Virus record (IMG/VR): IMGVR_UViG_3300032268_000832
Location: 62,001 to 126,000 of that record
DNA length: 64,000 nt
Strand: one strand, 5' to 3'
The translations under genes were made by a program, and so were the position numbers. The notes under the pieces are model-generated. The model made no database searches. It was not told the origin of the DNA and saw nothing but the letters and a program-made list of their open reading frames with translations. Below are positions 8,664 through 61,776 of the stretch, piece by piece; within the stretch, counting starts at the first letter, position 1, and each line of letters begins with the position of its first letter.

Positions 8664-8678
8664 ACGCTTTTTTTATTA

Positions 8679-8686: not shown

Positions 8687-8687
8687 C

Positions 8688-26282: not shown

Positions 26283-26285
26283 ATT

Positions 26286-26987: not shown

Positions 26988-26999
26988 GTTTTATTTTTT

Positions 27000-27458
27000 T
27001 TAGATGATTACTTGTCCTACGTTTAACGCCGTGTTAGGTGTTACATAGTTTGAACCAGCAATTTGTGTTGGCCCGTAACCCCAAGTACCTGCATTTAAAG
27101 TAACTTGTGGGTTACGTCCAGAACCGATGATAGCTGTTGCGCCATTTATATCTTCAACGTTACCACCGTTATAATTAAAAATAGCACCATAAACACCATT
27201 ACTAACACCATCACCAGTACCTCTACCATTGTAAGGTGATAAAGTATCAGAAACAGCATTTGTGTGACTTAAACCGTATTGGTCATTGATGTCACCAGTT
27301 ATTTGTGGGTTTTTATAAGGTCCTTGAAACGCGTATTTTGTCGTACCAATTCTAGATTGTTGGATTATTGAAAGACGACCCGAACCTGGGTATAACGGAT
27401 TACCGTTTATCGCGTAATATTCTAATGGTGACTGAGCACCGTTATAAATTTGTGGCAT
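27000..27458 (-). CDS. Gly/Asn/Tyr-rich putative virion protein
   Basis: 152 aa, few charged residues, late operon. Confidence 0.55.
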   Translation of the reverse strand: MPQIYNGAQSPLEYYAINGNPLYPGSGRLSIIQQSRIGTTKYAFQGPYKNPQITGDINDQYGLSHTNAVSDTLSPYNGRGTGDGVSNGVYGAIFNYNGGNVEDINGATAIIGSGRNPQVTLNAGTWGYGPTQIAGSNYVTPNTALNVGQVII

Positions 27459-27462
27459 AACT

Positions 27463-27894
27463 TTATATTATTTTATTTATGTTATTGTTATTCATGTATT
27501 CTATTAAATATTTGATATTTGAAATTTCTTCGGTTAAGGCTTGACTATTCGAAAGAATTTTTTTTGTTTCCCCACCAGAGTGGTCAGCTTTTTTAGTAAC
27601 TTTAGCTATACTAACTTCAGTACCGTTTTTTTCATCTTGATATGTATTGTTAGGGTCTGTAGTATTTGTTATTTTTTTAGATAATTTATCTTTTTTTCTT
27701 TCAGCTTGTACTAACCTTTCAATTTCAACATATCTATTTTGCCCACCTAAATTATTATATTCAAAACAGTTTCCGTTTCCTTCACAAACTTTTTTAGCAT
27801 TCTTTAACCTAGAAAATTCCATAGCATATGCTTGATGAGCTTTTGTTTCACCATTTTTACTATTAATTTGCTTATCGGCTATATTACTATTCAT
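27463..27894 (-). CDS. Hypothetical late protein
   Basis: 143 aa; C-terminal LTEEISNIKYLIEYM helix. Confidence 0.55.
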   Translation of the reverse strand: MNSNIADKQINSKNGETKAHQAYAMEFSRLKNAKKVCEGNGNCFEYNNLGGQNRYVEIERLVQAERKKDKLSKKITNTTDPNNTYQDEKNGTEVSIAKVTKKADHSGGETKKILSNSQALTEEISNIKYLIEYMNNNNINKII

Positions 27895-28394
27895 TATATA
27901 TTTTTATTTTTAGGTTTATTTTTTTTAGCTTCTATAGCTTTTTTTAATTCATCTAATTGTTCATCTGATAAATTACTATCTTCTATTGAGTCAACAAGTT
28001 TAGCTACTTTAGGATTATAGTTTTTATCGGTAACGTCATTTGTTAACTTTTTTTTAACCAAATCCTCAATAATTTCATCTAAGTCTTTTTTAGATAGAAT
28101 TTTTTTATCTTCACTTAATTTACTAATTTGACCATAGTACATAGGTAAACCACCTGTAGTTGAACCACCAAAGCTATAAACAGCAAACCATGGTATGTTT
28201 TGTCTATATCTAGAAAAAACTTTATCTGTTGTTGTTGACTTACCTTTTTGATAATCTGAATAATCGTTAAAGGGTTTATCAACTGGTCCAGTCTCTATTT
28301 CTTTGTCTTTTACTTGGTTTCTATCACCACCATCTGAAAATATATCACCACCAACTAGTTCGTCCAATTGTTTTTTATTCATAAATCTACTCAT
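27894..28394 (-). CDS. Hypothetical late protein
   Basis: 166 aa; repeated KK.LDE motif; first gene after late motif. Confidence 0.6.
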   Translation of the reverse strand: MSRFMNKKQLDELVGGDIFSDGGDRNQVKDKEIETGPVDKPFNDYSDYQKGKSTTTDKVFSRYRQNIPWFAVYSFGGSTTGGLPMYYGQISKLSEDKKILSKKDLDEIIEDLVKKKLTNDVTDKNYNPKVAKLVDSIEDSNLSDEQLDELKKAIEAKKNKPKNKNI

Positions 28395-32119: not shown

Positions 32120-32129
32120 AAAAAATTTA

Positions 32130-32138
32130 ATATTTATA
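32130..32138 (+). promoter_or_regulatory. Putative late promoter ATATTTATA
   Basis: 14 nt upstream of ATG 32153. Confidence 0.65.
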
Positions 32139-32152
32139 TAAAAACACATAAA

Positions 32153-33535
32153 ATGCCAAATAGAAAAATAAGTCAATTACAAGCAAACGCTAATCTAACA
32201 GTTAGTGATATATTCCCTATTGTTAACAGTGGGACAACAAAAAAACAAGACATACAAGGGTTATTAAATTTTTTAACACCTTATTTTAGTGGTAACACAG
32301 AACTTTATATCACAGGTGGTACATATTCTGCTGGTACTGCTGTGTTTACCAACAGCACTGGCGGTACATTTAGCGTTTCTGGGTTTAGTACTGGTAGTTC
32401 ATTTACTGGAGGTACGGTATCTGGTGCAACTAGATTTACTAACGGATTAACAGCAAGTACAATATCAGCTACTACATATCAAAATTTACCATCATTTACT
32501 GGAGGTACGGTATCTGGAGCAACTAGATTTACCAACGGATTAACAGCGACTACAATATCAGCTACTACATATCAAAATTTACCTTTAGATATTAGAGTAA
32601 CTGGTGGTACTTATGATGAAAATAGTCGTGTTGCCACATTCACTAACAACACTGGTGGTACATTTGAAGTTCCTGGTTTTTATAAACCTTTATGGTATGC
32701 TGAACCTAGTTCAGCACCTGGCGCCTCACCAATTGTGGCTGGTACTAACAGTATTGCAATTGGTGATAGTGCAAATGCATCGGCTGAACATATGTTTGTT
32801 GTTGGTAATAGTGCTGGTGTTGCGGCTAATGGTTCTGCTTTCTCTAATTTTATTGGGACTTCTGCTGGTCGTGATGCTGGTGAATCTTATTATTCTAACT
32901 TTATTGGTAGAGAAGCTGGTGATGGGTCTAATGGTTCTAATCAATCTAATTTTATTGGGTATCAAGCTGGTTATAGGGCTACAAATGCTAGAAATTCTAA
33001 TTTTTTAGGTAATAGCGCTGGTATTAGAACCGATGTTGCTGAATACTGTAATTTTATTGGATATCAGGTAGCATCTGGGGCTACTAAGACTAGATATTCA
33101 ACATTTATTGGATATCAAGCTGGTTATAATACTAATTCAGATTATTCTATTATAATCGGTCACAAAGCTGGTTTAAATTCAGCTGGTAGTGTTAGTGACA
33201 ATAACATTATCATAGGTACTAATATAACATTACCACCAAATACTAAACGTCAAATTAACATTGGTGGTATATTGTTTGGTGCAAATGTTTACAATAACAC
33301 TGAAACTGAACCTATTTATTCAGCTAGAACAGATGGTGCTATTGGTATAAATGTTGTTGAACCACGAGCTAATTTACATATAGGTCCATCAACAACAGAC
33401 CAAGCTCTTATGAGACTTGAAGTTGGACCAGCACCTTCAAGTCCAAATGACGGTGATATTTGGTTAGAAAGTAATACTTTAACTGGTTTAAAAATAAGAA
33501 TAAGTGGTGTAACAAGAACAATAAATATAACTTAA
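32153..33535 (+). CDS. Fibre protein with 17-aa SNFxG..AG beta-helix repeats
   Basis: N-terminal KISQL motif, TGGT modules, SNFIGYQAG repeats. Confidence 0.7.
   Translation: MPNRKISQLQANANLTVSDIFPIVNSGTTKKQDIQGLLNFLTPYFSGNTELYITGGTYSAGTAVFTNSTGGTFSVSGFSTGSSFTGGTVSGATRFTNGLTASTISATTYQNLPSFTGGTVSGATRFTNGLTATTISATTYQNLPLDIRVTGGTYDENSRVATFTNNTGGTFEVPGFYKPLWYAEPSSAPGASPIVAGTNSIAIGDSANASAEHMFVVGNSAGVAANGSAFSNFIGTSAGRDAGESYYSNFIGREAGDGSNGSNQSNFIGYQAGYRATNARNSNFLGNSAGIRTDVAEYCNFIGYQVASGATKTRYSTFIGYQAGYNTNSDYSIIIGHKAGLNSAGSVSDNNIIIGTNITLPPNTKRQINIGGILFGANVYNNTETEPIYSARTDGAIGINVVEPRANLHIGPSTTDQALMRLEVGPAPSSPNDGDIWLESNTLTGLKIRISGVTRTINIT
32399..32583 (+). repeat. In-frame tandem duplication, 93 bp period
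   Basis: 32399-32490 vs 32492-32583, 4 mismatches by hand. Confidence 0.9.
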
Positions 33536-33580
33536 AATTATTTTTATAATTATAATAAAACAAATAAAATAATTAAAAAT

Positions 33581-33952
33581 ATGGAATTCTCAATAAATAA
33601 AAACTCTACACTTCCTGTGTTAAAATTAGAATTAATACAGGACGGTAGAAACGATTTTCAAAAGTTTCACGAAAAAGTGCAAAACGCTAGCATTTATTTT
33701 ACTATGACAGATGTTATCACAGGTGTTAAACGTATAGCAAAAAAACCTACTGGAATTGAACAAGTAGAACCAACTAATTGTGTTGGTGATGAATTTTATC
33801 TAACTTATCAATTTACTGAAAGAGATTCTTCAGTATCTGGTAGATATGTTGGTCAGTTTGAAATTGATTTTTTAGACGGTACTGGAACCCTTATAGTTCC
33901 AATTAGAGAAGAACTTTTTATTAACATTTTAGAAAGAACAATAAAAAAATAA
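33581..33952 (+). CDS. BppU-N-like Ig-fold adaptor protein
   Basis: FSINKNSTLPVLKLEL...IYFTM...GRYVGQFEIDF...LIVP. Confidence 0.55.
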   Translation: MEFSINKNSTLPVLKLELIQDGRNDFQKFHEKVQNASIYFTMTDVITGVKRIAKKPTGIEQVEPTNCVGDEFYLTYQFTERDSSVSGRYVGQFEIDFLDGTGTLIVPIREELFINILERTIKK

Positions 33953-33984
33953 CATTAAAAACTTGCTTTTTTAAAAATAAAATC

Positions 33985-34017
33985 ATAACTTTGTGTGTCA
34001 CAAAGTTATTTTTTTTT
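33985..34017 (+). terminator. Intrinsic terminator overlapping a sigmaA-like -7 element
   Basis: ataactttgtg-tgt-cacaaagttat perfect 11 bp stem then T run. Confidence 0.7.
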
Positions 34018-34030
34018 ACACTCATTTTAC

Positions 34031-34061
34031 TTGTCTAATAATAAAATGTTTAGTATATTTG
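34031..34061 (+). promoter_or_regulatory. Bacteroidota sigmaA-type promoter TTG-N20-TATATTTG
   Basis: Consensus match 16 nt upstream of polB ATG. Confidence 0.7.
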
Positions 34062-34077
34062 CAATAAAAAATAAATT

Positions 34078-37000
34078 ATGAGCCATACTGAACAAAAAGT
34101 TAGCAATGAAAGAATAGAATCTTTCTTACAAGGTAGTGACCCTCAAAAATATATTGTCGCTGTTGAGTCTTATTATGATAAACCTTACGTATCATTAGTA
34201 GTTAATGATGTAGAGGAAGGTAATAAACGAATAGAGGAACACAATTTCCAACCATTTCTTTGGTTTAAAGAAGATGTGACACAATATCTTTATCAAGGAA
34301 AACGAATGAAAGTTATTGAGGCTAGTAAACATTTTGGTGTTAAAATCACCAAATTAAGAACATGGTCTGAAGATGGTTTTATTCCTGATAGGATGGAAAA
34401 TGGTTATATTTATATGGCTAAGTGTAAAAAAAACTCTAACGATTTAATTAATTTTTTTAAAAACGGTGGTGTCGATATCTTTAGTAAAGAACACCAAAAA
34501 TCTTTTATCATGTTCAGCCCTACTGAACAATTTTTAATTCAATCAGGTAAGCGTTTATTCAAAGGGTTTGAGGATTACGATGATTTGCATAGATTACAAT
34601 TTGACTTGGAAACCGAGGGGTTATTTGCAACTAGAGATGCAATATTTCAAATCGGTGTTAAAGACAATAAGGGTAACGAAGCGGTTATAGAAACAATAGG
34701 TGATTCACCTAAAGATAAACGTGAAAGTGAACGTCAAAATATTATTAAATTCTTTAAAATAATAGAATTTTTAAAACCAGACATTATTGCTGGTTACAAT
34801 TCTGAAAATTTTGACTGGCCTTTTATATTTGAGCGCGCCGAAAGACTTGGATTACCAGTTACTGAGGTTGCAATTACTCTTAGCAGAGCATCAAAGATTA
34901 AAAGAAAACCAGCAACACTTAAATTAGGTGGTGAAACAGAAGCTTATAATCAAACACATATGTTTGGTTATAATATTTTGGATATTTCACATGCTGTTCG
35001 TAGAGCAATGGCTATCAACTCTGAGATTAAGTCTTGGGGATTGAAGTATATTACACAATATTCTGAAATTGCAAAACCTAATCGTGTTTATGTGCCAGGT
35101 GATAAAATAAACGCAACATGGGCCGATAAAGAAAACAAATACGCGTTTAATGATACCAATGGTGATTGGTATAAAATAACTGAGACAAATCAAATACAAG
35201 ATGGTTATGTGGTTAAAACAGGTGCTTTCATTGTTCAAAGATATTTGATTGATGACCTTTGGGAGACTGAACAAATTGATAATATTTTCAATCAAGCTAG
35301 TTTTCTTATCGCAAAAATTTTACCTACTACGTTTCAACGTTCATCAACTATGGGAACGGCTGGACAATGGAAACTTATTATGGCCGCATGGTCATATGAA
35401 AATGGATTGGCTATTCCAGAAACACAACCTAAAAGAGATTTTACTGGTGGTTTGTCACGTTTGTTAGAAGTAGGTTTTGCTAGAAACGTATATAAATTAG
35501 ACTTTGCTGCATTATACCCTAAAACACAGTTAACTTGGGATATTTTCCCAGAATTAGATATAACTGGTGTGATGAAAGGTACATTAACATATGTTGTGGA
35601 TACGCGTGATAAATACAAGTTCTTAAATGGTAAAGAGAAGGGTGTTTTTAAATCTTTGGAGAAAAAATTAAAAGAAGAAAGTGCTAATATGTCACAAGCT
35701 GAGATTGATAAACTTAAAAAAGAAATTCAAGAGCATAAGGCTTTGGCTAACTTGTATGATAAAAAACAGTTACCTCTTAAGATTCTTGCAAACTCATGGT
35801 TTGGTTCATATGGGGCACCATATATCTTTAACTGGGGTGATACAGATTCAGCTGAAGAAACAACATGTCGTGGTCGTCAATACTTGAGGCTTATGGTACG
35901 TCATTTTACGGAAAAATACGGATTTAGAGCGCTAGTATTAGACACTGATGGTTGTAACTTTGCAGCTCCTGATAATTTAAACGATTTTTCATATGTTGCT
36001 AACGGTACTCATTGGAAAACTGAGGGTGAAGGTGGTAAAACACTTTATGGTATCGATGCTGTATTGGCTGAATTTAACGAAACATTTATGATTGGCCGAA
36101 TGGGTCTGGATTTAGATGACGTGTGTACCTCTACAATTAATTTTGCTAGAAAGAATTATGCTAATGATATTGGTGGTAAGATTAAATTAGTAGGAAACTC
36201 TATTAAATCTAAGAAAATGCCAGTTTATATTGAGGAATTCTTAAATAAGGGTATTAGAATGTTATTAGATGGTGATGGTTATTCATTTATTAACCATTAT
36301 TATGAATACGTTGATAAAATATACAACTATAAAATCCCATTGATTAAAATGGCTTCTAAATCTAAGGTTAAATTATCAATAACTGATTATAAGAAAAAAG
36401 CAAAAATGAAAAACAAAGCTGGTAACCCTATGCCAAAACAAGCGCACATGGAATTAGCTATGTTAAATAATTTGGATACTAGTTTAGGTGATGTATTGTA
36501 TTATATAAACACTGGTACTTCTAAATCTCAAGGTGATTTGCAAACTATCTGGGAAAATAAAATGACCAAAAAACAGCTTGAAAAATGGTATATTAACAAT
36601 GGTCAAGACTCTACTCCACCTGAAGCTAAAAGCACTCTTAAAATAAACTGTAAGCTAATCATGCCTGATACGGTTGAGCGAGATTTTGAGGCTATTAAAG
36701 AACTTGAAATGTTGAAAAAAGCTGTTGAAAAAGTAGGTGAAGAAGGTGGTGATGTTAACCAATTTGATGCTAGAATAAAAGAACTGGAATCTACTTTATT
36801 TACTGATGAATACAACGTTGCTAGATATTTAGAAGCTTTCAATAAAAAAGTTAAACCATTGTTAGTTTGTTTTAGTCCAGAAATCAGAGACCAAATTCAA
36901 TTATCTATAATTAAAATTAAAGATAAGGAAACTAAAAAAACATTTGAGGTCTTAAAGGATAGAATTATTTTTACTAAATCTCAATGTAGTTTAATTTCAG

Positions 37001-50550: not shown

Positions 50551-53406
50551 ATGGCAACAAAAGTGTTCGTAAGTCCAGGGGTTTATACCTCAGAAAAAGA
50601 CTTATCATTTATTACACGTCAAATCGGTGTTACAACTTTAGGTTTAGTTGGGGAGACTACAATAGGTCCTGCATTTCAACCAATTTTTGTAGGCAATTAT
50701 GGCGAATTCCAATCTTTTTTTGGTGGCCAAAATGCTACTAGAGTAAAAGATAACGGTGCACCAAGATATGAATTACCTTATATCGCTAAATCGTATTTAT
50801 CTCAATCAAACCAATTATTCGTAACTAGAGTATTAGGGTTTTCTGGATATGATGCAGGTAAAGCATGGGGTATAACATTACAAGGTACATTAGACCCTGA
50901 TACTGTTGGGGTAACTTCATCAGGAACCACATATAGTCCTATAATTTCATATACAGCAATAACTGCTACTAATGAGGTTGTTAGTGTTGTTTCAAACGTA
51001 CCTTTAATTCAACAATTATATAATGATGGTACTTTAGTAAATCCATTGAATATATTGGGTACTTTCAGTGCTACAGGTAATGTCGCATCTATAGATGTAG
51101 AGTACAAAAAAACAGGTGCTACTTATAGTGGTGTATCATTTAATTTATTTGTTAATTCAATCGGTACTACTGGTTTATATACAACTGGTACAACAACAGG
51201 TGCTACAGTTACTTATTCTGGTTCAGCATATTCTGATGTTGAAAACAAGTTGGTAACTTTATTACGTTCTAGAGGTACAATAAATTCAGCTACACAGTTA
51301 CCTAACTTTGAAGTTAGTGCGGCTACAGGTAATTTAGGTTTTAACCCTACTTATACCGCTGCAAATAGTGACGCTTTAGGTGATTTCGCGTTGACTGGTA
51401 CATCTAATACTCAAGGTGCTTTTAGTTATGTATTATCGTTTGATAAAACAAAACAAAACTACATTACTAGAGTATTGGGTAGAGAAGCTCAAGATGGAAC
51501 AACAGCAATTTTTGTTGAAGAGTTCTATAACAATATGTTTACTGATTTAAACGCTGCTGAAAAAATAGCTGGTATTAATTTAAGTCTTGTGAATTATAGT
51601 GGAGAATTTTCTGATTATCAAAAAGAATACCAACCAGCAGTTACACCTTATGTAGTTTCTGAATTACGTGGTACTAACTTATTTAGATTATTTAGATTCT
51701 GGACAATATCAGACGGTAACGCTGCTAACGAACAATTTAAAATATCTATTAGAAATATTAATTTAGATTCTGGTGAATTTGATGTTGTTGTTAGAGGATT
51801 CTACGATACTGATGCTCAACCAACTGTATTGGAAACATTCAGTCGTTGTACTATGAGCCCAACATCTAATAATTACGTTGCTAGAAGAATAGGTACACTT
51901 GATGGTGAATACCCATCTAAATCATCTTATGTTCTTATTGAGATGGATACTGATTCAGATACTAGCGATATGGTTCCAGCTGGTTTCGTAGGTTTCCCAA
52001 TTAGAGATTACCAAGAAAATAGCAATACAACAGTTGTTAACCCTGCTATTGAGTATAAAAAAGCTTATGGTACATTTGAAAATAAACGTAAATATTATTT
52101 AGGTTTATCTGAAACTGTAGGTATTGATTCGGATTTCTTTGATTATAAAGGGGTTCCTGTAGGACAAACTTATGATATGTGGACTGGTCTTACAAAAGGT
52201 TTCCATATGGACGTTAATGCTACTGGCGCTACAATCGACAATGTATTTGTTGTGATTAACAATAGTGGTGATACATATAATCCAATATTCTTATTTGATA
52301 CTGGTGACGCTGCGTTTAACAGTACTGCTGTAGCAGATGCTAATAATCCATATAATAAAATATATGCGCGTAAATTTACATTTGCACCTTATGGTGGTTT
52401 TGATGGATGGGATATATACAGAACTAGAAGAAGTAACTTAGACTCATTCTTAATCAACGGTACTAATGGTGTTAAAGGTTTAAATAGTGGTGCTTTTACT
52501 AATAGAACACTTACAAACGGTGATTTAGGTATTAATTCAGATTACTACGCATATTTAGAAGCTATTTGGACATTTAAAAACCCAGAAGCAGTTAATATTA
52601 ATGTGTTTGCAACTCCAGGTATTGATACGTTTGATAACAGTAACTTAATTGAGGCTGCTATTGAAATGGTTGAAACTGATAGAGCTGACTCATTATATAT
52701 TTTAACAACCCCAGATACAAATGCTGGTGGTGAGGTTATGTCAGCTGAAGAAATTTCAGATTTCTATTCTGATGGTTCTTTCGATAGTAACTACTCATGT
52801 ACTTATTGGCCATGGATTCAAGTAAACGATACTGAAAATAATGTTTACATTTGGATGCCGCCAACAAGAGATGTAGTTAGAAACATCGCGTTAACTGACA
52901 ACATTGCATTCCCATGGTTTGCTGTTGCTGGTATTCAAAGAGGTGATGTTGACTGTATTCAAGCTCGTAAAAAACTTACTCTTTCTGAAAGAGATGCGTT
53001 ATACGAAAATAGAGTTAACCCAATTGCAACTTTCACATCAGATGGTGTTAAAATCTGGGGTAATAAAACTCTTCAAGTTAAAGAATCTGCTCTTGACAGA
53101 ATCAACGTTAGAAGACTATTGTTACAAGCTAGAAAACTTATCTCTGCTGTTTCTATCAGATTGTTATTTGAACAAAACGATAGTGTTGTAAGAAATCAAT
53201 TCTTATCATTGGTTAACCCAATCTTAGATAATATTAGAGCTGAAAGAGGTCTTACAGACTTTAGAGTGGTTCTTTCAAATGACCCAGAAGATATCGATAG
53301 AAATCAACTTACAGGTCAGATATTCTTGAAACCAACTAGAGCGTTAGAGTTCATCCAATTAGAGTTCGTAATTATGAACACTGGTGCATCTTTCGATAAC
53401 ATCTAA
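50551..53406 (+). CDS. Contractile tail sheath protein (gp18-like)
   Basis: SPGVYTSEKD, G.T..GPAF.P, YWPW, PWFAVAG..RG, NPI, WGNKTL, RINVRRL, PTRALEFI. Confidence 0.95.
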   Translation: MATKVFVSPGVYTSEKDLSFITRQIGVTTLGLVGETTIGPAFQPIFVGNYGEFQSFFGGQNATRVKDNGAPRYELPYIAKSYLSQSNQLFVTRVLGFSGYDAGKAWGITLQGTLDPDTVGVTSSGTTYSPIISYTAITATNEVVSVVSNVPLIQQLYNDGTLVNPLNILGTFSATGNVASIDVEYKKTGATYSGVSFNLFVNSIGTTGLYTTGTTTGATVTYSGSAYSDVENKLVTLLRSRGTINSATQLPNFEVSAATGNLGFNPTYTAANSDALGDFALTGTSNTQGAFSYVLSFDKTKQNYITRVLGREAQDGTTAIFVEEFYNNMFTDLNAAEKIAGINLSLVNYSGEFSDYQKEYQPAVTPYVVSELRGTNLFRLFRFWTISDGNAANEQFKISIRNINLDSGEFDVVVRGFYDTDAQPTVLETFSRCTMSPTSNNYVARRIGTLDGEYPSKSSYVLIEMDTDSDTSDMVPAGFVGFPIRDYQENSNTTVVNPAIEYKKAYGTFENKRKYYLGLSETVGIDSDFFDYKGVPVGQTYDMWTGLTKGFHMDVNATGATIDNVFVVINNSGDTYNPIFLFDTGDAAFNSTAVADANNPYNKIYARKFTFAPYGGFDGWDIYRTRRSNLDSFLINGTNGVKGLNSGAFTNRTLTNGDLGINSDYYAYLEAIWTFKNPEAVNINVFATPGIDTFDNSNLIEAAIEMVETDRADSLYILTTPDTNAGGEVMSAEEISDFYSDGSFDSNYSCTYWPWIQVNDTENNVYIWMPPTRDVVRNIALTDNIAFPWFAVAGIQRGDVDCIQARKKLTLSERDALYENRVNPIATFTSDGVKIWGNKTLQVKESALDRINVRRLLLQARKLISAVSIRLLFEQNDSVVRNQFLSLVNPILDNIRAERGLTDFRVVLSNDPEDIDRNQLTGQIFLKPTRALEFIQLEFVIMNTGASFDNI

Positions 53407-53423: not shown

Positions 53424-53453
53424 AAAAAGGCTTCCTTAGTGGGAGCTTTTTTT
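53424..53453 (+). terminator. Intrinsic terminator
   Basis: aaaaaggcttcc...gggagcttttttt after sheath stop. Confidence 0.7.
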
Positions 53454-53463
53454 GTTTTATAAG

Positions 53464-53471
53464 ATATTTAT
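53464..53471 (+). promoter_or_regulatory. Putative late promoter ATATTTAT
   Basis: 14 nt upstream of ATG 53486. Confidence 0.6.
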
Positions 53472-53485
53472 GTTAAACAACTATT

Positions 53486-53857
53486 ATGAAGCTTATAATT
53501 ACAGAAACACAATACAATAGACTTTTTTTAAACGAAGAAAAAGAAGTATCATTCAATTTTGATAATGACACCATATTGGCGTTCGGAAAATTAATTGGAT
53601 TACCAATGAAAGGTCAAAACGGTTTTTTAGCTGATAGAGCGTTAGATAACCAAGAAGTATTATCTAAGATTTATTCAATTATGACAAATGTTAATGAGAA
53701 GAATAAAATTATCGATGATTTGGGGAATAAAGGTATGGTTGATTCAGATAAAAAACTACATGATAATATTGAATCAATCGTTACAAATTTTAACAAATAT
53801 TCAAAGGATAAAACATTAAATTTGGATACCGTGTTAAATAAAATACTTAGAAAATAA
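53486..53857 (+). CDS. Putative internal head protein with IITETQY leader
   Basis: MKLIITETQYNRLFLNE; leader shared with 58037. Confidence 0.55.
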   Translation: MKLIITETQYNRLFLNEEKEVSFNFDNDTILAFGKLIGLPMKGQNGFLADRALDNQEVLSKIYSIMTNVNEKNKIIDDLGNKGMVDSDKKLHDNIESIVTNFNKYSKDKTLNLDTVLNKILRK

Positions 53858-53896
53858 AATAATTTTTATTTTTTCTTCAATTTTTTTTCTTTCATG

Positions 53897-53905
53897 ATAT
53901 TTATA
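53897..53905 (+). promoter_or_regulatory. Putative late promoter ATATTTATA
   Basis: Upstream of tail tube gene. Confidence 0.6.
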
Positions 53906-53968
53906 ATTAAATAATAATTTATTACCAAAAAAAAGGTACTAATACATATCTTAAAAAAAACAAAAATT

Positions 53969-54457
53969 ATGGCTGATTTATTAATGAAAATGCCCCTACC
54001 ATACGAGCCTAAGAAAAAGAATCGTTGGTTAATTACATTTCCAGCTGACTTAGGTATCCAACAATGGTGGTTATCTTCAGCATCTAGACCTTCAATAACA
54101 CAAAATGAGGTTGAGATTCCTTTCCTAAACACATCTACATGGGTTATTGGTAGATTTACTTGGGAAGCAATTGACGTTACATTCCGTGACCCAATTGGTC
54201 CTTCTGCTACTCAAGCAATTATGGAATGGGTTCGTCTTCACTCTGAATCAATCACAGGTCGTCAAGGTTACGCTGCTGGTTATAAAAGACCAGTTGAGTT
54301 AGAAATGCTTGACCCGACAGGTGTTGTTATCGAGAAATGGTTATTAGATGGAACTATGCTTACAAATGTAGGATTTGGTGATTTATCATTTGAGGATGAT
54401 GGTATCGCTGAGATTACAGCAACTCTTAGGTTTGATAGAGCAATCTTATTATTCTAA
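53969..54457 (+). CDS. Tail tube protein (gp19-like)
   Basis: EPKKKNRW, RPSI, GRFTWEAIDVTFRDPI, MEW, LDPTGVVIEKWLL.G, FGDL. Confidence 0.9.
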   Translation: MADLLMKMPLPYEPKKKNRWLITFPADLGIQQWWLSSASRPSITQNEVEIPFLNTSTWVIGRFTWEAIDVTFRDPIGPSATQAIMEWVRLHSESITGRQGYAAGYKRPVELEMLDPTGVVIEKWLLDGTMLTNVGFGDLSFEDDGIAEITATLRFDRAILLF

Positions 54458-54498
54458 TATTTAAAAATATATTATCCTAACCCATAAAAAATAAATAT

Positions 54499-54526
54499 AA
54501 AAACCATCTTTTTAGGTGGTTTTTTT
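54499..54526 (+). terminator. Intrinsic terminator
   Basis: aaaaaccatct-tttt-aggtggttttttt. Confidence 0.7.
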
Positions 54527-54537
54527 ATTTTATAGTA

Positions 54538-54546
54538 ATATTTATA
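54538..54546 (+). promoter_or_regulatory. Putative late promoter ATATTTATA
   Basis: 11 nt upstream of ATG 54558. Confidence 0.65.
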
Positions 54547-54557
54547 ATAAAATAAAA

Positions 54558-55223
54558 ATGCGAAAATTAGATAAACTAAAAAATATTAGAAAAGTTAATT
54601 TATTAATAGAACAACGATATTTGAGTGAATTTAATGGTGGTGAGAATGAAGTTAGACTTAAACAGTTATACTCTGGTTATTTAGATACTATTTTCCCTAA
54701 TTCTGATATTAAAAAAATACTATACCATGGAACAAAGTCTAAAGAACTTGAAGGTGGGTCTTTTAGGGTATCTCAGGATGGAACATATGGTTCAGGTGTA
54801 TATTTTTTTGATAGAAACCACAAATATAGTGTTGGTGAGTTTGGTGATAATACGATATTTGTTAAGATAAATTCTAGTATGGCGTTTAATAATATATTAC
54901 TTAAACAAGAATGGAGTAAATTAGCAAATAAGTTAAAAGATAGTCCAGATTATCACCATAGGGATTCTTTGAGTGGTTTTATCAACCAATACATTAGAAA
55001 AGAAGGGTATGATACTATTATTGATTATTATGGTTCAGATATAGTTTATGTTGCTTTATATTTAGAAAATATACATATTTTGGGTGATGAAAAAGACATA
55101 TTATCTTTTAAAAAATACGTTGAAGCAAATAAAAATAACCAATTAAATAATGAAATAAAAGATGGTGTTGAAGATTTATTTAACACTAAACCTAATTTAA
55201 AAAATATAAAAATAAATAATTAA
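54558..55223 (+). CDS. ADP-ribosyltransferase-like (ART-PolyVal-type) protein with shared leader
   Basis: LYHGT...G.YGSGVYF...GYDTII...IVYV...IHILG; start moved to ATG 54558. Confidence 0.6.
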   Translation: MRKLDKLKNIRKVNLLIEQRYLSEFNGGENEVRLKQLYSGYLDTIFPNSDIKKILYHGTKSKELEGGSFRVSQDGTYGSGVYFFDRNHKYSVGEFGDNTIFVKINSSMAFNNILLKQEWSKLANKLKDSPDYHHRDSLSGFINQYIRKEGYDTIIDYYGSDIVYVALYLENIHILGDEKDILSFKKYVEANKNNQLNNEIKDGVEDLFNTKPNLKNIKINN

Positions 55224-55231
55224 ATAAAACT

Positions 55232-55648
55232 ATGAGAAGATTTGATAAAAAAATAAATTTAAAAAAAGCAAATATATTAGCAGAACAAAGATATTTGGTG
55301 ACTAAAGGTTTGATTAACGAAGGTCCTATAACAGATGTTGATGGGGTAACCAATGATTTATTAAAAGATTATATTTATGCTTATGATAACGATAAAGATT
55401 TAGGTATGGTTGATGCTAAAATATATGATTTAATGAAAAAAACACTTAGTGTTCATGGTGCTGAACCAGAAATTAAAAAACAAATGTATTTAACCATGGC
55501 TGAAAAATTAAAAAATACAAATATACCTAAATTACAATCGTTTGGTCAAACCTATAGTATGATTGGTAGGTCATTTGGTACTGAAAGCCCTATTGGTGAT
55601 ACTAGTGATATGGTAAATCATATAAAAAGTCAAGGTGGTTTAGAATAA
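55232..55648 (+). CDS. Putative internal head protein with EQRYL leader
   Basis: MRRFDKKINLKKANILAEQRYL matches N-terminus of 54558. Confidence 0.55.
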   Translation: MRRFDKKINLKKANILAEQRYLVTKGLINEGPITDVDGVTNDLLKDYIYAYDNDKDLGMVDAKIYDLMKKTLSVHGAEPEIKKQMYLTMAEKLKNTNIPKLQSFGQTYSMIGRSFGTESPIGDTSDMVNHIKSQGGLE

Positions 55649-55665
55649 TAATAACAAACTAAAAT

Positions 55666-55709
55666 AAAATGAGTTGATTATTTAATTTAATTTAATCAGC
55701 TCATTTTTT
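55666..55709 (+). terminator. Intrinsic terminator
   Basis: aaaatgagttgatta...taatcagctcatttttt long stem (one G-U pair). Confidence 0.65.
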
Positions 55710-55758
55710 ATTTACAAAAAAATTAACTTTCTTATATTTATTTTTAAATAGTTTTAAA

Positions 55759-56454
55759 ATGAATAAACAAGTTAAAAATAAAAAAGAAATTTTAAGTGGA
55801 GACACCTTAGAGATTAAACATTTAAATGGTGTTAAAAGTTATTTAAAAAAAACACCACCTATTGGGAATAGACATGAGGATGCGAAAAGTATTAAAGGTG
55901 ATTATCCTAAATCAATTAATGAATATTTAGATAAAAGGAAAAATGAGGTTCCTATGTATGACCCTAAAACAGGTGAACCAAATCCTTATTATGAAAAGTT
56001 AACTGGTAATAAAAATCCTTTGTTAGAAACACCTAAAATGATAAATCCTAATATTAAAGAACCTAAATTAAAAAATAGGTTTTTAGTTCATTTACCAAAA
56101 GAATTTGGTATTGATATATGGGATGTTAAAAATATAAACAGACCTACAGTTATTTTAAAACCAAAAAAAATTTTAGGGTTAACTTATGGTTATGAAAAAA
56201 ATTGTTCTCAAATAAACATTGAATTTTATGACAAAATACAAAATAAAAATAAAAACCTATTAAATTATTTAGAAACCCAAAAAAAATTCTCATTTTATAT
56301 TGAAGAGTTAGACCCAACTGGTGTTGTAATCGATAGATTTGAATTAAGTCATTGTAATTTAACTTATCTTAGTTTTGGTGATTTAGATTATAAATCTAAA
56401 GAAATAAATAATATTATCTTATCAATTAATATTGGTAAATTAGAATTAAAATAA
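55759..56454 (+). CDS. Divergent tail-tube paralog with N-terminal extension
   Basis: EPKLKNRF...RPTV...IEFYD...LDPTGVVIDRFEL...FGDLDY aligns by eye with 53969. Confidence 0.7.
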   Translation: MNKQVKNKKEILSGDTLEIKHLNGVKSYLKKTPPIGNRHEDAKSIKGDYPKSINEYLDKRKNEVPMYDPKTGEPNPYYEKLTGNKNPLLETPKMINPNIKEPKLKNRFLVHLPKEFGIDIWDVKNINRPTVILKPKKILGLTYGYEKNCSQINIEFYDKIQNKNKNLLNYLETQKKFSFYIEELDPTGVVIDRFELSHCNLTYLSFGDLDYKSKEINNIILSINIGKLELK

Positions 56455-56461
56455 ATAAAGT

Positions 56462-57727
56462 ATGTCAGATATTAAACCAAATGTTTTCCCAAGCAATCAA
56501 CCACAAAAACCTAATTTAACCGAAGCTGAAAAACTTGCAGCGTATGAAGCTGAAAAGATGATGGTTACTAACGAAATTTATTCGTCTCAAATGCAAACAG
56601 ACACACCTTATGAACATATGAGTGCGATTGAACAAATGAGATATAGAACTGAAGCTCAATTAAAACAAAGACAAGACATTGGCGTTGTTAAAGACCCTTC
56701 ATTATCAGAAAAAACCAATTCTAGAGTATTTCAACAACCAACTAAAAAAGACAACAACGAAGAACAAATTAGACTTAGAGATGAGCAGTTAAAAAATAAT
56801 TTACAACAAACTCAGAACTATCAACGTTTATCTCAAGAAGCTATGGATAGAAATAAAGAATATTACGAACAACAAACAATGGAAAATAAACCAAGTTATC
56901 AACCACAACCTAGTAGTCCTGTTATTAAAGATAAGACTACTTATACATCACAACAAGCAATAGACCCATACATATTAGAATTGAGTCAACCAAATTATAA
57001 CGCACCTTTTGATGTTATTCCTTTACCTTCTAAGGGTAAATTATATAGAAATAAAAAACAAAATGTAAGATTAGCTTATATGACAACGGCTGATGAAAAT
57101 ATCCTTACTAGCCCTAATTTATTAAAAAGTGGTGAGTTTTTAGAAATTCTTATAAACAGAAAATTATTAGAACCTGAATTACGTTATAAAGATTTATTAC
57201 CAGGGGACCGTAACGCAATCATGCTTTGGCTTAGAGCGACAGCTTATGGTGAAATGTATCCAGTTACTTTATTGGATGAAAACGACGAAGCTTTTGAAAC
57301 GGAAATAAATTTAAATGAACTTAAAACAATTGATTTAAACGTTGAACCAGATGAAGATGGTTTATTTAATTTTACAATGCCTTTAAGCAAAGCAAATGTT
57401 AGATTTAAATTATTAACATGTGGTGATATTGATAATATTGAAGAAATGTTAGAGAGAGATAGGGAAAACAATATTTTAGTTAACAACGCGAATACTTACA
57501 AATTAGAAAAAATGATTATTGAAGTTAATGGTGATACCAATAAAACTATGATTAGAGATTTTGTTAATTATATGAGAATACAAGATTCAAAAGAATTCAA
57601 TAAATTTGTTGAATCCATTGAGACTGGTATTGATTTAGATATTGAGGTTGGGACTCCTGGAGGTGGGTCCATAAAAACCTTTCTTCCCCTTAACGTCAGA
57701 TTTTTTTGGCCTGACTTCCGAGTATAA
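56462..57727 (+). CDS. Baseplate hub/tail assembly chaperone (gp26-like) with Gln-rich N-terminus
   Basis: IPLPSKGKLY, YMTTADENIL, GDRNAI...LRATAYG, LPLSK..V.FKLLT, ends FFWP. Confidence 0.75.
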   Translation: MSDIKPNVFPSNQPQKPNLTEAEKLAAYEAEKMMVTNEIYSSQMQTDTPYEHMSAIEQMRYRTEAQLKQRQDIGVVKDPSLSEKTNSRVFQQPTKKDNNEEQIRLRDEQLKNNLQQTQNYQRLSQEAMDRNKEYYEQQTMENKPSYQPQPSSPVIKDKTTYTSQQAIDPYILELSQPNYNAPFDVIPLPSKGKLYRNKKQNVRLAYMTTADENILTSPNLLKSGEFLEILINRKLLEPELRYKDLLPGDRNAIMLWLRATAYGEMYPVTLLDENDEAFETEINLNELKTIDLNVEPDEDGLFNFTMPLSKANVRFKLLTCGDIDNIEEMLERDRENNILVNNANTYKLEKMIIEVNGDTNKTMIRDFVNYMRIQDSKEFNKFVESIETGIDLDIEVGTPGGGSIKTFLPLNVRFFWPDFRV

Positions 57728-57737
57728 ACCAATTGTT

Positions 57738-57980
57738 TTGGAAGAAACTTTTATCGTTATGCAACAATTGAAAACACCTTATATTGACGTAATGTCAATG
57801 CCAGTGTATGAAAGAAGGTTTTTTATTAATTTATTATTAAACCAACATGAAAAACAGCAACAATACATTGAAGATAATGCGGGTACAACAAATTCAAACG
57901 CTAAGGGTTCTAGAAAAACAAAAATATCTGGAGATGCTTTAAAATCAAAAATGAAATCTGGAGAAATCCCATTAAATTAA
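57738..57980 (+). CDS. gp51-like small protein / probable frameshift extension of the chaperone
   Basis: YIDVMSMPVYERRFF motif; frame open from 57675 across the T7 run. Confidence 0.65.
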   Translation: MEETFIVMQQLKTPYIDVMSMPVYERRFFINLLLNQHEKQQQYIEDNAGTTNSNAKGSRKTKISGDALKSKMKSGEIPLN

Positions 57981-57982
57981 TT

Positions 57983-58004
57983 AATCCCCATTTTGGGGAT
58001 TTTT
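57983..58004 (+). terminator. Intrinsic terminator
   Basis: aatcccca-ttt-tggggattttt. Confidence 0.7.
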
Positions 58005-58014
58005 AATTTATAAG

Positions 58015-58023
58015 ATATTTATA
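58015..58023 (+). promoter_or_regulatory. Putative late promoter ATATTTATA
   Basis: 13 nt upstream of ATG 58037. Confidence 0.65.
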
Positions 58024-58036
58024 AATAAAACTTATC

Positions 58037-59305
58037 ATGAAAAAGAAAATAATTTTAACTGAAACACAATATCTTAAGTTAACTAAATTTTTATTGGAAG
58101 ACATAAATAATGATTTTAAATACATTAAGAATGGTGATATTTTAAGTTTTACGTTAAAAAATAATCAAAACGTAAATTTAAAAATCACTAGCGTAAACAT
58201 ACCTAATAATGAAATTTTAGCTTATGGTCCAAAAAATGAAAAAATAATGTTAAGGATTGGTGAATTCAACGAAAAAAACGATTTTTTAACTTATCATCAA
58301 TTTGATGATGTTGCTAAAAAATACATACCTAAAAAAGTTTATGTTAAAGATATGAATATTTGGAGAGATAATGATTTATTTGTCGCTCCAGAAAATATTA
58401 CTAAACCAACAAATAATCAGTCAAATAACAACATAAATGTAAATCAACAACAAAATAATCAATCTAAAAATTTAAGTGGTTTAGAAGTTAATAATGTAAT
58501 AACAGTTAAAAATCAAAATGATGAAACTTATTCTATTACAATAACTTCTATTGAAGGTGATGATGTTTATGGTAAAGACCAAGATAATTTTGATGTTGTT
58601 ATTAAAAATATAGATGATAAAAATAAAGAAATGACAATTATTAAAAATGATGGTGATAATCAAATTGAAGAAATTATAAAATTTGAAGAGATTAACATAG
58701 AAAAAAATAAAAATAAAATTAACCCTGATTATTATAATGATTTATTTAATAAGTATTATAAAGAAATCATAAACGACCCTAATTTAAAGAAAGCTTTTTA
58801 TAAAGCACCTTCATTTTGGAATTATTTCACGTCTGCTTTAAATAACGAAAAAGCTAGAGGTAAAGGTATTTTTCCCGCATATGAAATAATTAACGGTTAT
58901 TTTAATAAAAAAATTGATGAAAAATTACCAGGATTTGCTAATAAAGAAAATAAAAGAGCTAGTTTTTATTTATTTGATGATATTAATATAAGGTATAAAA
59001 AAATAAATGAAGAAGAATTTAAAAATTTTACTTTAAACGCTGGTTATTATAAAGCAACTGTTAGACAATATGAAGCTGGGTTAGGTGACGTAAAAGTTTT
59101 AACATATAGAAGTAGTGGTGGGTCTTTTGGTTTCAAGATAATTGTAAAAAAACCAACTGGTGAAAGACCTGATGAATATTTTTGTGACGTATATGTTAAT
59201 AAAAATAATGTCGAGGAAAATAAATATTTTGTTGAAAATGTCAGAATTAAATTTTTAGATTCTGAAGGTTATACATCTTATGAAAAATTAAAAAAAAATA
59301 GTTAA
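58037..59305 (+). CDS. Putative internal head protein with IILTETQY leader
   Basis: MKKKIILTETQYLKLTKFLLE; two similar beta-rich repeats separated by an N/Q linker. Confidence 0.55.
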   Translation: MKKKIILTETQYLKLTKFLLEDINNDFKYIKNGDILSFTLKNNQNVNLKITSVNIPNNEILAYGPKNEKIMLRIGEFNEKNDFLTYHQFDDVAKKYIPKKVYVKDMNIWRDNDLFVAPENITKPTNNQSNNNINVNQQQNNQSKNLSGLEVNNVITVKNQNDETYSITITSIEGDDVYGKDQDNFDVVIKNIDDKNKEMTIIKNDGDNQIEEIIKFEEINIEKNKNKINPDYYNDLFNKYYKEIINDPNLKKAFYKAPSFWNYFTSALNNEKARGKGIFPAYEIINGYFNKKIDEKLPGFANKENKRASFYLFDDINIRYKKINEEEFKNFTLNAGYYKATVRQYEAGLGDVKVLTYRSSGGSFGFKIIVKKPTGERPDEYFCDVYVNKNNVEENKYFVENVRIKFLDSEGYTSYEKLKKNS

Positions 59306-59307: not shown

Positions 59308-61776
59308 ATGGCTGAAATGAATGAAGAAGAATTAAAAGCATTCGAAAAAGCTTTAGCTAAGGCTAGGGCTGAATTAAAAGAAATGTATAACATCCAGAAA
59401 GAAATAAATAGTGGATGGGATGGGTTTACAAAGGGTGTTAAAGATGTTAGTAATTTAACTTCTGATATTAAAAATGTTAATAAACAAATATTAGAATTAG
59501 AGAAAGACCAAACAGAAGAAGGTAAATTAAAAGTAGCCGCATTAAAAAAAGAACTTGCTTTATTAGAAAAGAATAGAGATGTTATTAAACAAACTATAAA
59601 AGACGTTAATAAATTTAAATTAGCTGGTGGTACAGCAATGGCTGGTGTTGTTAAAGGTGCTTCTAATCTTGATAAAATACCTAATTTTATTACAGGTAAA
59701 TTAGGCCTTTTAAAAGGTCTTTTTGAAATGGACAAAGCCATTAGAGTAACCGTTAATCAAATGGGTACTCTTGGTAAACAAAGTGATATAGTAAGACAAA
59801 ATATAAAATCAGCCGCTGTAAACACAGTATCCTTTGGTGTTGGTATTAAAGAGATTGCTGAAATTCAAGCACAATACGCAGAGTCTTTAGGTAGAAATGT
59901 ATTAGTTTCTCAGAAGGGTCTTGAATCAATTGCTGAAATGGGTAAATCTAGTGGTCTAGGTATTGAAGGTGCAACAGAAATGGCTGCTCAGTTTGACAAA
60001 ATGGGTGTGTCAGCAGATAGGACTGGAGAATTTATGGAAGAAACTTTAAATAATTCTAGCGCTATGGGGTTAAACACTACCAAAGTAATGAAGAATTTAA
60101 ACCAAAACTTTAAAATGCTTAATAAGTATCGTTTTAAAGATGGTATTAAGGGTATCACTAAAATGGCTCAAATGGCGACTAAATTAGGTGTTGAAATGGA
60201 TTTTGCTGCTGGTATGTCTGATAAGCTTTGGAACGTTGAAGGTGCTGTTGAGATGTCGGCACAATTAAATGTTATGGGTGGTGCATGGGCTCAAATGGCC
60301 GACCCTTTCAAATTAATGTATCAAGCGCGTAATGACATACAAGGTTTAACAGAAGATATTGCTAAGGCTGCATCCCAATCAATGACTTTCGCTAAAGATG
60401 GTAGTATTGAAACTAACGCTATGGAAATGCATAGGTTAAAAATAATTGCGGAGCAAACTGGTCTTGAATATGAAAAATTGGTTGAGTTAGGTAAAACTCA
60501 ATTTAAAATGGGTAAAATTGAAATGCAAGCTTCTAACTTACCTGATGACGTAAAAGAGTTTGTTGCAAATACAGCTGAATTTAAAAACGGTAAAGCTTAT
60601 ATCCAAGTTGAAAGTGGTGATAAAAAATTATTAAGTCATATAACAAAATCTGATAGAGATTATTTAAAACGTCAAGTAGAAGAGAAAAAAACAATGAAAG
60701 AAAGGGCAGATGCTGCACAATCTTTTGATGAAACGTTAAATAACTTGTTAAACATGGTTAAAATTTATATGATGCCAATTGTTGAAGGGTTATCAAACGT
60801 ATTAAAACCAGTTATAGATGATTTAATGGGAGAAAAAGGTACGGCCTTTAAAAACGAATTAAAAAGTTTAGGTGAACAACTTGGTAATTTTATTTCAGGT
60901 GCAGCTGAATGGGTTAAACCTTTAATACAAATGGCTGTCGCTTTAGGTCCTAAAGGTATATTTTATACATGGTTAACAGGTAAAGCTCTTATGGGTTTAT
61001 TTGAAGTGGGGAAATGGTTTTTAAATGGATTGTCCTTATCTAAAGGATTTTTAATGGGAACTAAAGGTTTTATGGGTGGTTCTGGTAATAGTACACCTAA
61101 CACCACTACTTCTAAAGGTTCTGGTAAATTTGGAAAATTTGGGTCAACAAAGGGTGGTATGTCTTTTGGTAAATCTTTAATGAGAGGTTTAGGTAGTGGT
61201 GCTGTTTTAGGTGTTGGTGGTGCCGCTATGGATTATGGTAGAAGTAAAATGGATAACCCAGAAAGTACTGGTGGTAAATGGCTTGGGGCTGGAGCTAAAG
61301 CAGCTGAGTTTGCTAGTTATGGTGCTATGATAGGTAGTATTATACCAGGTTTAGGGACTGGAGCTGGTGCTATAATAGGTGGTTTGATTGGTGGTGGTAA
61401 AGGTATCTATGATGAATTTTTTGATAAACCACAAAACGATGTTAAATTTCCAAAATTAGGACCTAACCATTCTAAAGGTAGAATGTTAACACAAGGAGGT
61501 AAAATAACACCAATTGATAACAAAGATGAATTATTAGCTATGAAACCTGGTGGTGTTGTTGATAAGACTCTAAATAACACAAACACTGGGATTTCTTCGA
61601 CAAAAATTGAATTTGGTGATTTAAATATTACTGGAGAAATCAAGATTAATTTACCAGGTGGAACACAAATTGGTTCTGAATTGTTAAAAAGTTCTGAATT
61701 TAAATCATCAATTACTAGAGTTGTTCAATCTCAACTTGAAAAAAATATAAATGGTAAAAATTCTGATAGAAAATAA
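59308..61776 (+). CDS. Tape measure protein
   Basis: 822 aa, helical Ala/Met-rich body, Gly-rich hydrophobic C-terminal segments, follows chaperone genes. Confidence 0.75.
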   Translation: MAEMNEEELKAFEKALAKARAELKEMYNIQKEINSGWDGFTKGVKDVSNLTSDIKNVNKQILELEKDQTEEGKLKVAALKKELALLEKNRDVIKQTIKDVNKFKLAGGTAMAGVVKGASNLDKIPNFITGKLGLLKGLFEMDKAIRVTVNQMGTLGKQSDIVRQNIKSAAVNTVSFGVGIKEIAEIQAQYAESLGRNVLVSQKGLESIAEMGKSSGLGIEGATEMAAQFDKMGVSADRTGEFMEETLNNSSAMGLNTTKVMKNLNQNFKMLNKYRFKDGIKGITKMAQMATKLGVEMDFAAGMSDKLWNVEGAVEMSAQLNVMGGAWAQMADPFKLMYQARNDIQGLTEDIAKAASQSMTFAKDGSIETNAMEMHRLKIIAEQTGLEYEKLVELGKTQFKMGKIEMQASNLPDDVKEFVANTAEFKNGKAYIQVESGDKKLLSHITKSDRDYLKRQVEEKKTMKERADAAQSFDETLNNLLNMVKIYMMPIVEGLSNVLKPVIDDLMGEKGTAFKNELKSLGEQLGNFISGAAEWVKPLIQMAVALGPKGIFYTWLTGKALMGLFEVGKWFLNGLSLSKGFLMGTKGFMGGSGNSTPNTTTSKGSGKFGKFGSTKGGMSFGKSLMRGLGSGAVLGVGGAAMDYGRSKMDNPESTGGKWLGAGAKAAEFASYGAMIGSIIPGLGTGAGAIIGGLIGGGKGIYDEFFDKPQNDVKFPKLGPNHSKGRMLTQGGKITPIDNKDELLAMKPGGVVDKTLNNTNTGISSTKIEFGDLNITGEIKINLPGGTQIGSELLKSSEFKSSITRVVQSQLEKNINGKNSDRK

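Follow-up and report, generated by a model that had tools for sequence, protein, structure and literature searches.

How do proteins that are otherwise unrelated come to begin with the same N-terminal leaders, and what would such leaders do when their genes lie between the core tail genes of a large phage? This question is raised by a DNA stretch of 64,000 nucleotides, here called the window, which comprises bases 62001–126000 of the IMG/VR record IMGVR_UViG_3300032268_000832 (306,463 bp, 31% G+C, CheckV completeness 86%), the genome of what its sequence identifies as an uncultivated, distant T4-like jumbo myovirus. Between window positions 53,424 and 59,305 four genes, named here by their start positions 53486, 54558, 55232, and 58037, encode proteins carrying two kinds of leader, and an earlier note on this DNA had proposed a modular tag that loads variable effectors into the phage head for injection. 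The best-supported reading, which we regard as plausible, is a T4-style system in which diversified and interchangeable leader families tag late proteins. More specifically, we assign a probability of about 0.6 to the leaders being T4-type capsid-targeting propeptides that are removed by a prohead protease. Coordinates refer to the window unless they are given as genome coordinates, and all features described for the tail region lie on the plus strand.

The 123-amino acid (aa) protein encoded at 53486–53857 and the 422-aa protein encoded at 58037–59305 have a common N-terminus with the motif IITETQY (leader A, residues 1–17 and 1–21, respectively), and the 221-aa protein encoded at 54558–55223 and the 138-aa protein encoded at 55232–55648 both begin with MRKxDKxxNxxKxNLLxEQRYL (leader B, residues 1–24 and, in its canonical form, residues 1–30). 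The mechanical call of the open reading frame (ORF) for the second of the four genes begins at GTG 54516, overlapping the terminator of the preceding tube gene; it is the leader homology that places the true start at ATG 54558. Local alignment of the B pair yielded scores of 65–91 compared to a maximum of 43 for shuffled N-termini; the A pair taken alone is marginal, with scores of 45–47. In the leader scan that had been proposed with the earlier note, profile hidden Markov models (HMMs) built from relatives only were run against the 386 proteins of the genome and recovered all four window genes, with E values of 7.5e-10 (the 53486 protein) and 6.5e-6 for family A and of 3e-18 (the 55232 protein) and 1e-12 for family B. 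The leaders had been described as shared in pairs; the sharing holds, the pairing does not, as the leaders form families. Family A (xIxITExQY…LxE) has four genes in the genome, at genome positions 27110, 115486, 120037, and 180902, family B (MRKxDKKxNxxKxNLLxEQRYLxSKGLIxE) has three genes and one weak match, and family C (MKxxIKxLLRE) has 11 genes at E<0.01 with the relatives-only model, a number that a pattern search raises to as many as 17. Three of the family C genes are located directly 3′ of the capsid gene. Most leader genes thus lie outside the four-gene region. Two relatives were examined as whole genomes, and a fourth family, D (IKLTESDLxNLVxKVLKE), is used by a more distant relative. 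Similar helices had also been reported at window positions 25671–28394; the ORFs there match none of the leader models (best E 0.15).

Each leader begins at the initiator methionine, and in a six-frame search the motifs were found two to five residues (families A and C) or 13 residues (family B) after a methionine and almost never elsewhere. On the minus strand at genome positions 31600–33100 one ORF ends in a C-terminal C-type copy (…KKLIKKLIRENLGF), and its neighbor contains an internal C-type copy that is flanked by an N-terminal domain on one side and by an HExxH-motif domain on the other. Loosely C-like N-termini were furthermore seen on two enzymes encoded downstream of early-type boxes, a CCA-adding tRNA nucleotidyltransferase (genome 203675–204847) and an RNA-repair protein combining a P-loop kinase with a CPD phosphodiesterase (genome 213762–214700). 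These two matches do not reach significance when scored by the C model, and the enzymes were therefore not counted as members, while HAD-type phosphatases do carry true leaders in relatives. Identical leader residues are often specified by different codons (5/13, 7/12, and 5/8 identical positions), from which it follows that selection acts on the leader peptide, and a recent duplication or a DNA-level element as the cause of the shared leaders was rejected because of these codon differences. Beyond this genome, a leader-B profile of 36 positions was compared to 1.84 billion cluster representatives and matched 659 of them at E<=1e-3, of which 196 also pass E<=1e-10; among the best 150 matches, which belong to proteins of 29–616 aa, 144 begin at residue 1. 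A tblastn search with the leader found nothing in 50,697 GenBank phage records.

All four window leaders were said to end in (L/I)-x-E, and this was borne out exactly, the leaders terminating in LNE17 (53486), LLE21 (58037), LSE24 (54558), and INE30 (55232). More generally every leader terminates in (L/I/V)-x-E, and among the unique leaders of relatives the motif [LIV]xE stands at the leader end in 44/52 of family A and 19/22 of family B, compared to ~20% of equivalent windows in other proteins. Thirty homologues of the 58037 protein (422 aa), with identities of 25–61%, were compared: the leader is 21 aa long in 27, position P3 is Leu in 28 and Ile in two, P2 is occupied by nine different residues, and P1 is Glu in 30/30. 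In the leader-B matches, [LIVM]xE has its Glu exactly at residue 30 in 143/144. An alignment of leader B (n=121) has the invariant residues M1, R2, D5, N14, E18, and E30, both invariant glutamates standing in an L-x-E context, and its mean column identity is only 7% overall since nothing is alignable beyond residue 30. Leader A likewise has two such sites, I-T-E and then L-x-E, with 12 residues as the commonest distance between them. An AlphaFold model of the 422-aa protein, which is of fair quality (pLDDT 77), places a leader helix at residues 9–20, followed by a low-confidence linker and a first domain that starts from residue 35.

The leader-free parts of 26 proteins have no mutual BLASTP similarity (best E 0.12), BLAST clustering of 129 cargoes of leader B gives at least 57 groups, and only 4/121 and 6/121 of them are annotated by Pfam and PHROG, respectively. 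Moreover, leaders are exchanged on the same cargo. A cargo beginning with FSWDGKY carries leader A in one relative and leader B in two others, an HAD-type cargo (LILLDVDDTL) carries leader A or C, and a third cargo (AYSFDWDDN) is found with leader A, with leader C, with a seven-residue stub (MKRIINE) or leaderless; in each of the swapped cases the shared cargo starts a few residues after the Glu of [L/I]xE. Hybrid leaders that enclose an A core between the head and the tail of leader B exist as well. Three database proteins (P0047–P0049) hold two to three leader copies in a single ORF, one such ORF being identical on seven contigs from different samples, and such an arrangement is the one expected of a polyprotein that is cleaved at every junction. 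On a 41-kb metagenome contig (L130) several leader genes follow one another at positions 6001–9067 and 13150–13851; among them are an ORF with three leaders and one with a B/A/B hybrid, and the genes lie behind the variant box GTATATTTACTGT. The modular part of the reading put forward in the earlier note is strongly supported by the presence of the same leader on unrelated cargo and by the leader swaps, while packaging and injection are steps that we infer.

For one of the window cargoes an enzymatic activity can be proposed. The 54558 protein matches the ART-PolyVal family PF18760 with E 0.0028 and 18.9 bits, below the cut-off of 31.2; in its own family 5/6 members match PF18760 (best E 1.9e-13), a protein that is 78% identical to it (P0002) has a precomputed PF18760 match, and the motifs YHGT and GxGVYFF are conserved. 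Judged by these matches, the cargo is probably a relative of the ART-PolyVal ADP-ribosyltransferase family. Searching the PDB sequences with a profile of the ART family returned no solved homologue, and the AlphaFold model of the protein, based on a six-sequence alignment, is unusable (pLDDT 36.7). The other three window cargoes, that of the 53486 protein included, gave neither a family match nor an informative fold match. The 422-aa protein has a conserved C-terminal domain of ~190 aa in addition to two beta domains, and a Foldseek comparison of its model to the PDB and BFVD returned TM scores of 0.1–0.2 and no informative match. Look-ups in the ESM Atlas remained at scores <0.8; one match, at 0.66, is named 'IpIV internal head protein' and is a lead only.

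The genome encodes a homologue of the gp21 prohead protease (Peptidase_S77, genome 53563–54288, E 7.5e-26, 88 bits, above the cut-off), which can be aligned to T4 gp21 along ~160 residues and retains the blocks GEL(D/N)HP and GVSSRG(V/L)GS. In the phage studied here these read GELDHP and GVSSRGVGS, which we take to be the catalytic blocks of gp21, and SSRGVGS is present in two relatives too. The genome encodes furthermore an acidic, scaffold-like protein, in which SLLTEAT is repeated, and a gp23-type capsid protein. The segment SSLLTE|ATT of the capsid protein aligns with SFLTE|AEI of T4 gp23, presumably the cleavage site of the latter, and the capsid proteins of two relatives read LLNE|S and LINE|A at the aligned point, i.e., Leu or Ile at P3, a free P2, and Glu at P1. 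The motif that ends the leaders is thus the motif found at the aligned maturation position of the T4 capsid protein. Short matches to the gp23 family were also observed outside the main capsid gene, at genome positions 226610–226774 and 278534–278647 and, in one relative (G001), at 198815–198991; one of these extra matches is a second copy of the N-terminal propeptide region of the capsid protein in a relative.

The promoter-like sequences of the genome may provide an indication of when leader genes are expressed. The 8-mer ATATTTAT (L box, a putative late promoter element) is 12-fold enriched upstream of ORFs with a peak 20–25 nt before the ATG, and it precedes the protease, sheath, and tail-fiber genes. 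A second box, TAnnTTTG, often in the form TATATTTGC, precedes the DNA polymerase gene and many small, early-looking genes, so that, on sequence criteria, the two promoter-like boxes partition the genome into structural genes on the one hand and early-looking genes with the DNA polymerase gene on the other. The box ATATTTAT is found upstream of 14/25 leader genes compared to 46/361 of the remaining genes (odds ratio 8.7, p 1.3e-6), and in related loci upstream of 55/78 leader genes compared to 237/638 others (odds ratio 4.0, p 3e-8). This association would fit with a late expression of the leader genes together with the structural genes. In some cases ATATTTAT lies as close as 12 nt to the ATG, pointing to very short mRNA 5′ leaders. 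In the window three leader genes out of four have the box, at a distance of 20–22 nt. The statement that each unit follows a terminator and has its own late box is accordingly correct for 53486, 54558, and 58037; gene 55232 has neither and starts 8 nt after the end of 54558, with which it is probably co-transcribed. As core genes carry the same boxes and terminators, this layout is general to late genes and not specific to the cassettes.

These observations can be accommodated in a mechanism modeled on T4. The leader would be a short, basic amphipathic helix that is made with its protein late in infection and that would dock the protein on the scaffold core of the assembling prohead. The gp21-family prohead protease would remove the leader at the conserved (L/I)-x-E, leaders A and B offering two such sites that are most often 12 residues apart; the T4 enzyme acts inside proheads. 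The mature window proteins would then begin at residues 18 (53486), 25 (54558), 31 (55232), and 22 (58037). The mature cargo would stay in the head with the DNA and would probably be ejected into the host, similar to the T4 internal proteins and Alt. That families A, B, C, and D and their hybrids constitute a combinatorial capsid-loading code, and that the multi-leader ORFs are polyproteins cut in the head, is a more tentative extension, to which we give somewhat less than even odds.

Several points weigh against capsid-targeting propeptides. The lineage is uncultivated, and packaging, cleavage, and injection are inferred only. The four window genes are part of the tail module and not of the head module. 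On T4 head-core proteins the leader HMMs score <2.5 bits, so that no homology is detectable, and (L/I/V)-x-E is a motif of low information which occurs in ~20% of 10-residue windows. The residues following the first conserved Glu are conserved as well, implying that offering a cut site is not the only role of the leader. Not all copies are N-terminal, the exceptions being the internal and the C-terminal C-type copies described above, and the two loosely C-like N-termini belong to RNA-repair enzymes with an early-type box. A complex prediction of the protease with the 138-aa leader-B protein gave no answer and is neutral.

The location in the tail module is the point from which the first of the competing explanations starts, in which the leader is an uncleaved helix that docks proteins to the tail, be it the tube lumen, the tape measure or the baseplate, for ejection or assembly. 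The four window genes do lie between sheath, tube, and tape measure with late-type boxes, and the 53486 and 58037 proteins occupy fixed slots beside tube and tape measure in close relatives; most leader genes, however, are found elsewhere, three of them directly after the capsid gene, and the invariant feature of the leaders is a head protease motif with a free P2 that recurs at the capsid maturation site. We know of no description of a comparable peptide that targets proteins to the tail, and we consider tail docking unlikely. A shade less credible to us is a generic interaction or regulatory helix, serving oligomerization, membrane binding or as a tag for a chaperone or unfoldase. It would account for the conservation beyond the putative cut sites, for the loose C-type N-termini on early-type RNA-repair genes, and for the motif copies at one C-terminal and one internal position, and a ClpA/B-like AAA+ gene is present in the genome; nevertheless, it leaves unexplained why the junction has Leu or Ile at P3, Glu at P1, and a free P2, why boxes of structural genes are enriched upstream of leader genes, and why leaderless orthologues exist.

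The remaining two explanations dispense with a function of the peptide. If the shared sequence acted in DNA or RNA, as a recombination hotspot or as a translation-initiation element, the peptide would be incidental, and the fast turnover of the slot genes between relatives and the exact shared runs of 15–21 nt around some starts would fit with this; these runs are mostly promoter box, though, and both the codon differences at identical residues and the conservation by amino-acid classes over 20–30 codons across 659 clusters speak so clearly for the peptide that we regard this explanation as very improbable. That the similarity is a chance product of N-termini rich in Lys, Ile, Leu, and Glu in an AT-rich genome gains some appeal from the A pair scoring barely above the shuffled maximum; independent HMMs reaching E 3e-18, the strict position of the motifs, and 659 clusters at a library-wide E<=1e-3 reduce its probability to a negligible level.

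If the leaders are indeed capsid-targeting propeptides, packaged and injected proteins could be listed from a genome, i.e., ~25 genes in the present one and at least 659 clusters for leader B, and the search for new effectors of host takeover and anti-defence would be confined to a defined set. If they also form a combinatorial code, the code would mark the whole packaged and injected set of a widespread lineage of Bacteroidota jumbo phages, and hundreds of unannotated cargo families would become identifiable from their sequence as a large, untapped collection of such effectors. Propeptides of this type would also mean that the T4 strategy of one tag for many cargoes has given rise, at a great distance from the T-even phages, to a set of interchangeable tags; being portable and paired with their own protease, these tags could serve to load foreign proteins into capsids.

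The setting of the four genes supports the view, already expressed in the earlier note, that cargo genes are inserted between core tail genes: the leader genes lie in variable slots of a conserved order. Starting from a search with the tail tube protein, which gave >593 related loci, gene order was compared in 80 of them and reads sheath, slot 1, tube, slot 2, a 421-aa gene, an 80-aa gene, slot 3, tape measure, with differing slot contents. The notion of variable cassettes applies to the slot contents, which vary, and not to the 53486 and 58037 proteins, which are conserved across close relatives, the former in slot 1. Slot 1 is bounded on its 5′ side by the core gene for the tail sheath (50551–53406), which is followed by an intrinsic-terminator-like hairpin (53424–53452) with a 12-bp stem and a T run, by a ATATTTAT box (53464–53471) 22 nt before the ATG of 53486, and by gene 53486 itself. 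The core gene for the tail tube protein (53969–54457; phrog_4542, E 1.2e-25) has at its 3′ side a terminator-like hairpin found by the hairpin scan (54499–54524) and a ATATTTAT box (54538–54545) 20 nt before the ATG of 54558. Downstream of 55232, an AT-rich terminator-like hairpin with a 12-bp stem, a 12-nt loop, and a T run (55669–55710, the hairpin itself at 55669–55704) was read by eye; the hairpin scanner passed over it because its loop is >8 nt. A further ATATTTAT box (55734–55741) is located 25 nt before a second tail-tube paralogue (55759–56454), an accessory, leaderless gene with an N-terminal extension of ~90 aa that is restricted to the closest relatives, being present in loci L006 and L008 only, while L019 has two tube-like ORFs.

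The 421-aa gene (56462–57727) is a core gene of the lineage that always lies between tube and tape measure, and the 80-aa gene (57738–57980) is a core gene in conserved order. The two are in different reading frames, are invariant neighbors across the lineage, and occupy the position at which other myoviruses encode their tail assembly chaperones; neither gave a family match. The 80-aa gene is followed by a terminator-like hairpin from the hairpin scan (57983–58001), a ATATTTAT box (58015–58022) 22 nt before the ATG of 58037, gene 58037, and the core gene for the tape measure protein (59308–61776, phrog_167), which marks the end of slot 3. Leaderless genes are found in slot 1 (L006, L007, L017, L018, L030, L033–L036, and L042) and in slot 2 (L007, L014, L021, L025, L040, and L078) too; these are minus-strand ORFs of 476–602 aa or genes for proteins of 287–301 aa that begin with a C2H2-like zinc finger, and they may be mobile or homing elements.

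Among isolates the best identities of the tail tube protein are 39% to Microcystis phage Mel-JY01 and 31% to Flavobacterium phage immuto, and a megablast search of GenBank phages with the region gave no match, the nearest isolates reaching only this 31–39% tube identity. A host from the Bacteroidota is suggested by the TAnnTTTG box, which we take to be the Bacteroidota −7 promoter element, and by signal peptides of flavobacterial appearance. The lineage is similar to the moraphages, a group reported from metagenomes of aquatic origin, and the main text of that report does not contain the term 'N-terminal' (PMC12619734). A ClpA-like gene is among the core genes of moraphages (PMC12619734), and in the present genome an 834-aa open frame of the ClpA/B-type AAA_2 family (E 1.4e-66) lies on the minus strand at genome positions 33069–35573.

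How does such a system compare to those already known? Polyvalent proteins, which occur in phages and conjugative elements and which reportedly are the source of the ART-PolyVal domain (attributed to Iyer et al. in 2017), likewise comprise diverse effectors proposed to enter with the incoming DNA and include the ART-PolyVal domain, as is probably the case here. They are a single giant multidomain polypeptide, however, whereas the system described here consists of separate small genes (123–422 aa in the window) with leaders of their own, and only the few relatives P0047–P0049 string two to three cargo units in a single ORF in a polyvalent-like manner. The Dar (defence against restriction) proteins of phage P1 are reportedly incorporated in an ordered hierarchy of protein–protein interactions and are not known to depend on a shared cleavable leader. 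Similar to the cargo proposed here, Dar proteins are accessory anti-defence proteins that are put into the capsid and ejected (PMC9024508, PMC12810830). Closer in kind are phiKZ, 201phi2-1, and SPN3US, jumbo phages that process many of their head-internal proteins with a distant relative of the gp21 protease (PMC5694885). In phages of the phiKZ/SPN3US type propeptides have several cut sites, and paralogues with identical N-termini occur (PMC5694885). Their protease belongs to MEROPS family S80 and cuts after S/A/G/T-x-E (PMC5694885), in contrast to the S77 protease and the Leu, Ile or Val at P3 found here, and their propeptides do not amount to a portable consensus tag that could be recognized by sequence in hundreds of cargo families.

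The closest parallel is T4 itself, and the facts on T4 cited in the earlier note agree with the literature (PMC3012670, PMC5694885). The diverse internal proteins of T4 have only the capsid-targeting sequence (CTS) in common (PMC3012670), and Alt is cleaved at ITE-6 and LTE-619, the extra propeptide sites being proposed to aid the clearance of fragments (PMC5694885). The T4 proteins IPI-III, Alt, gp24, gp22, gp67, and gp68 possess short N-terminal peptides ending in (L/I)-x-E as do the leaders here, and in the T4 record the N-termini read MKTYQEFIAE for ipII and ipIII, MELITE for Alt, and MAKINELLRE for gp24, that of ipI ending in TITE. Homology of family C to MAKINELLRE of gp24 and of family A to MELITE of Alt is unsupported at the bit scores given above. 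In both systems a protease of the gp21 family is encoded and the capsid proteins agree in their cut motif at the aligned position, both have diverse and fast-evolving cargo, and the ADP-ribosyltransferase Alt has a probable counterpart in the ART-PolyVal relative. T-even internal proteins use a single CTS, whereas at least four leader families (A–D) and hybrids are in use here; the leaders are 11–30 aa long and thus longer than those of T4, with two conserved cut-type sites in A and B; and, unlike in T4, there are ~25 tagged genes per genome, some encoding proteins of 500–700 aa, leaders are swapped on orthologous cargo, some ORFs contain internal copies, and the putative ADP-ribosyltransferase is of the PolyVal family. 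The likeness to T4 propeptides is one of form and logic only.

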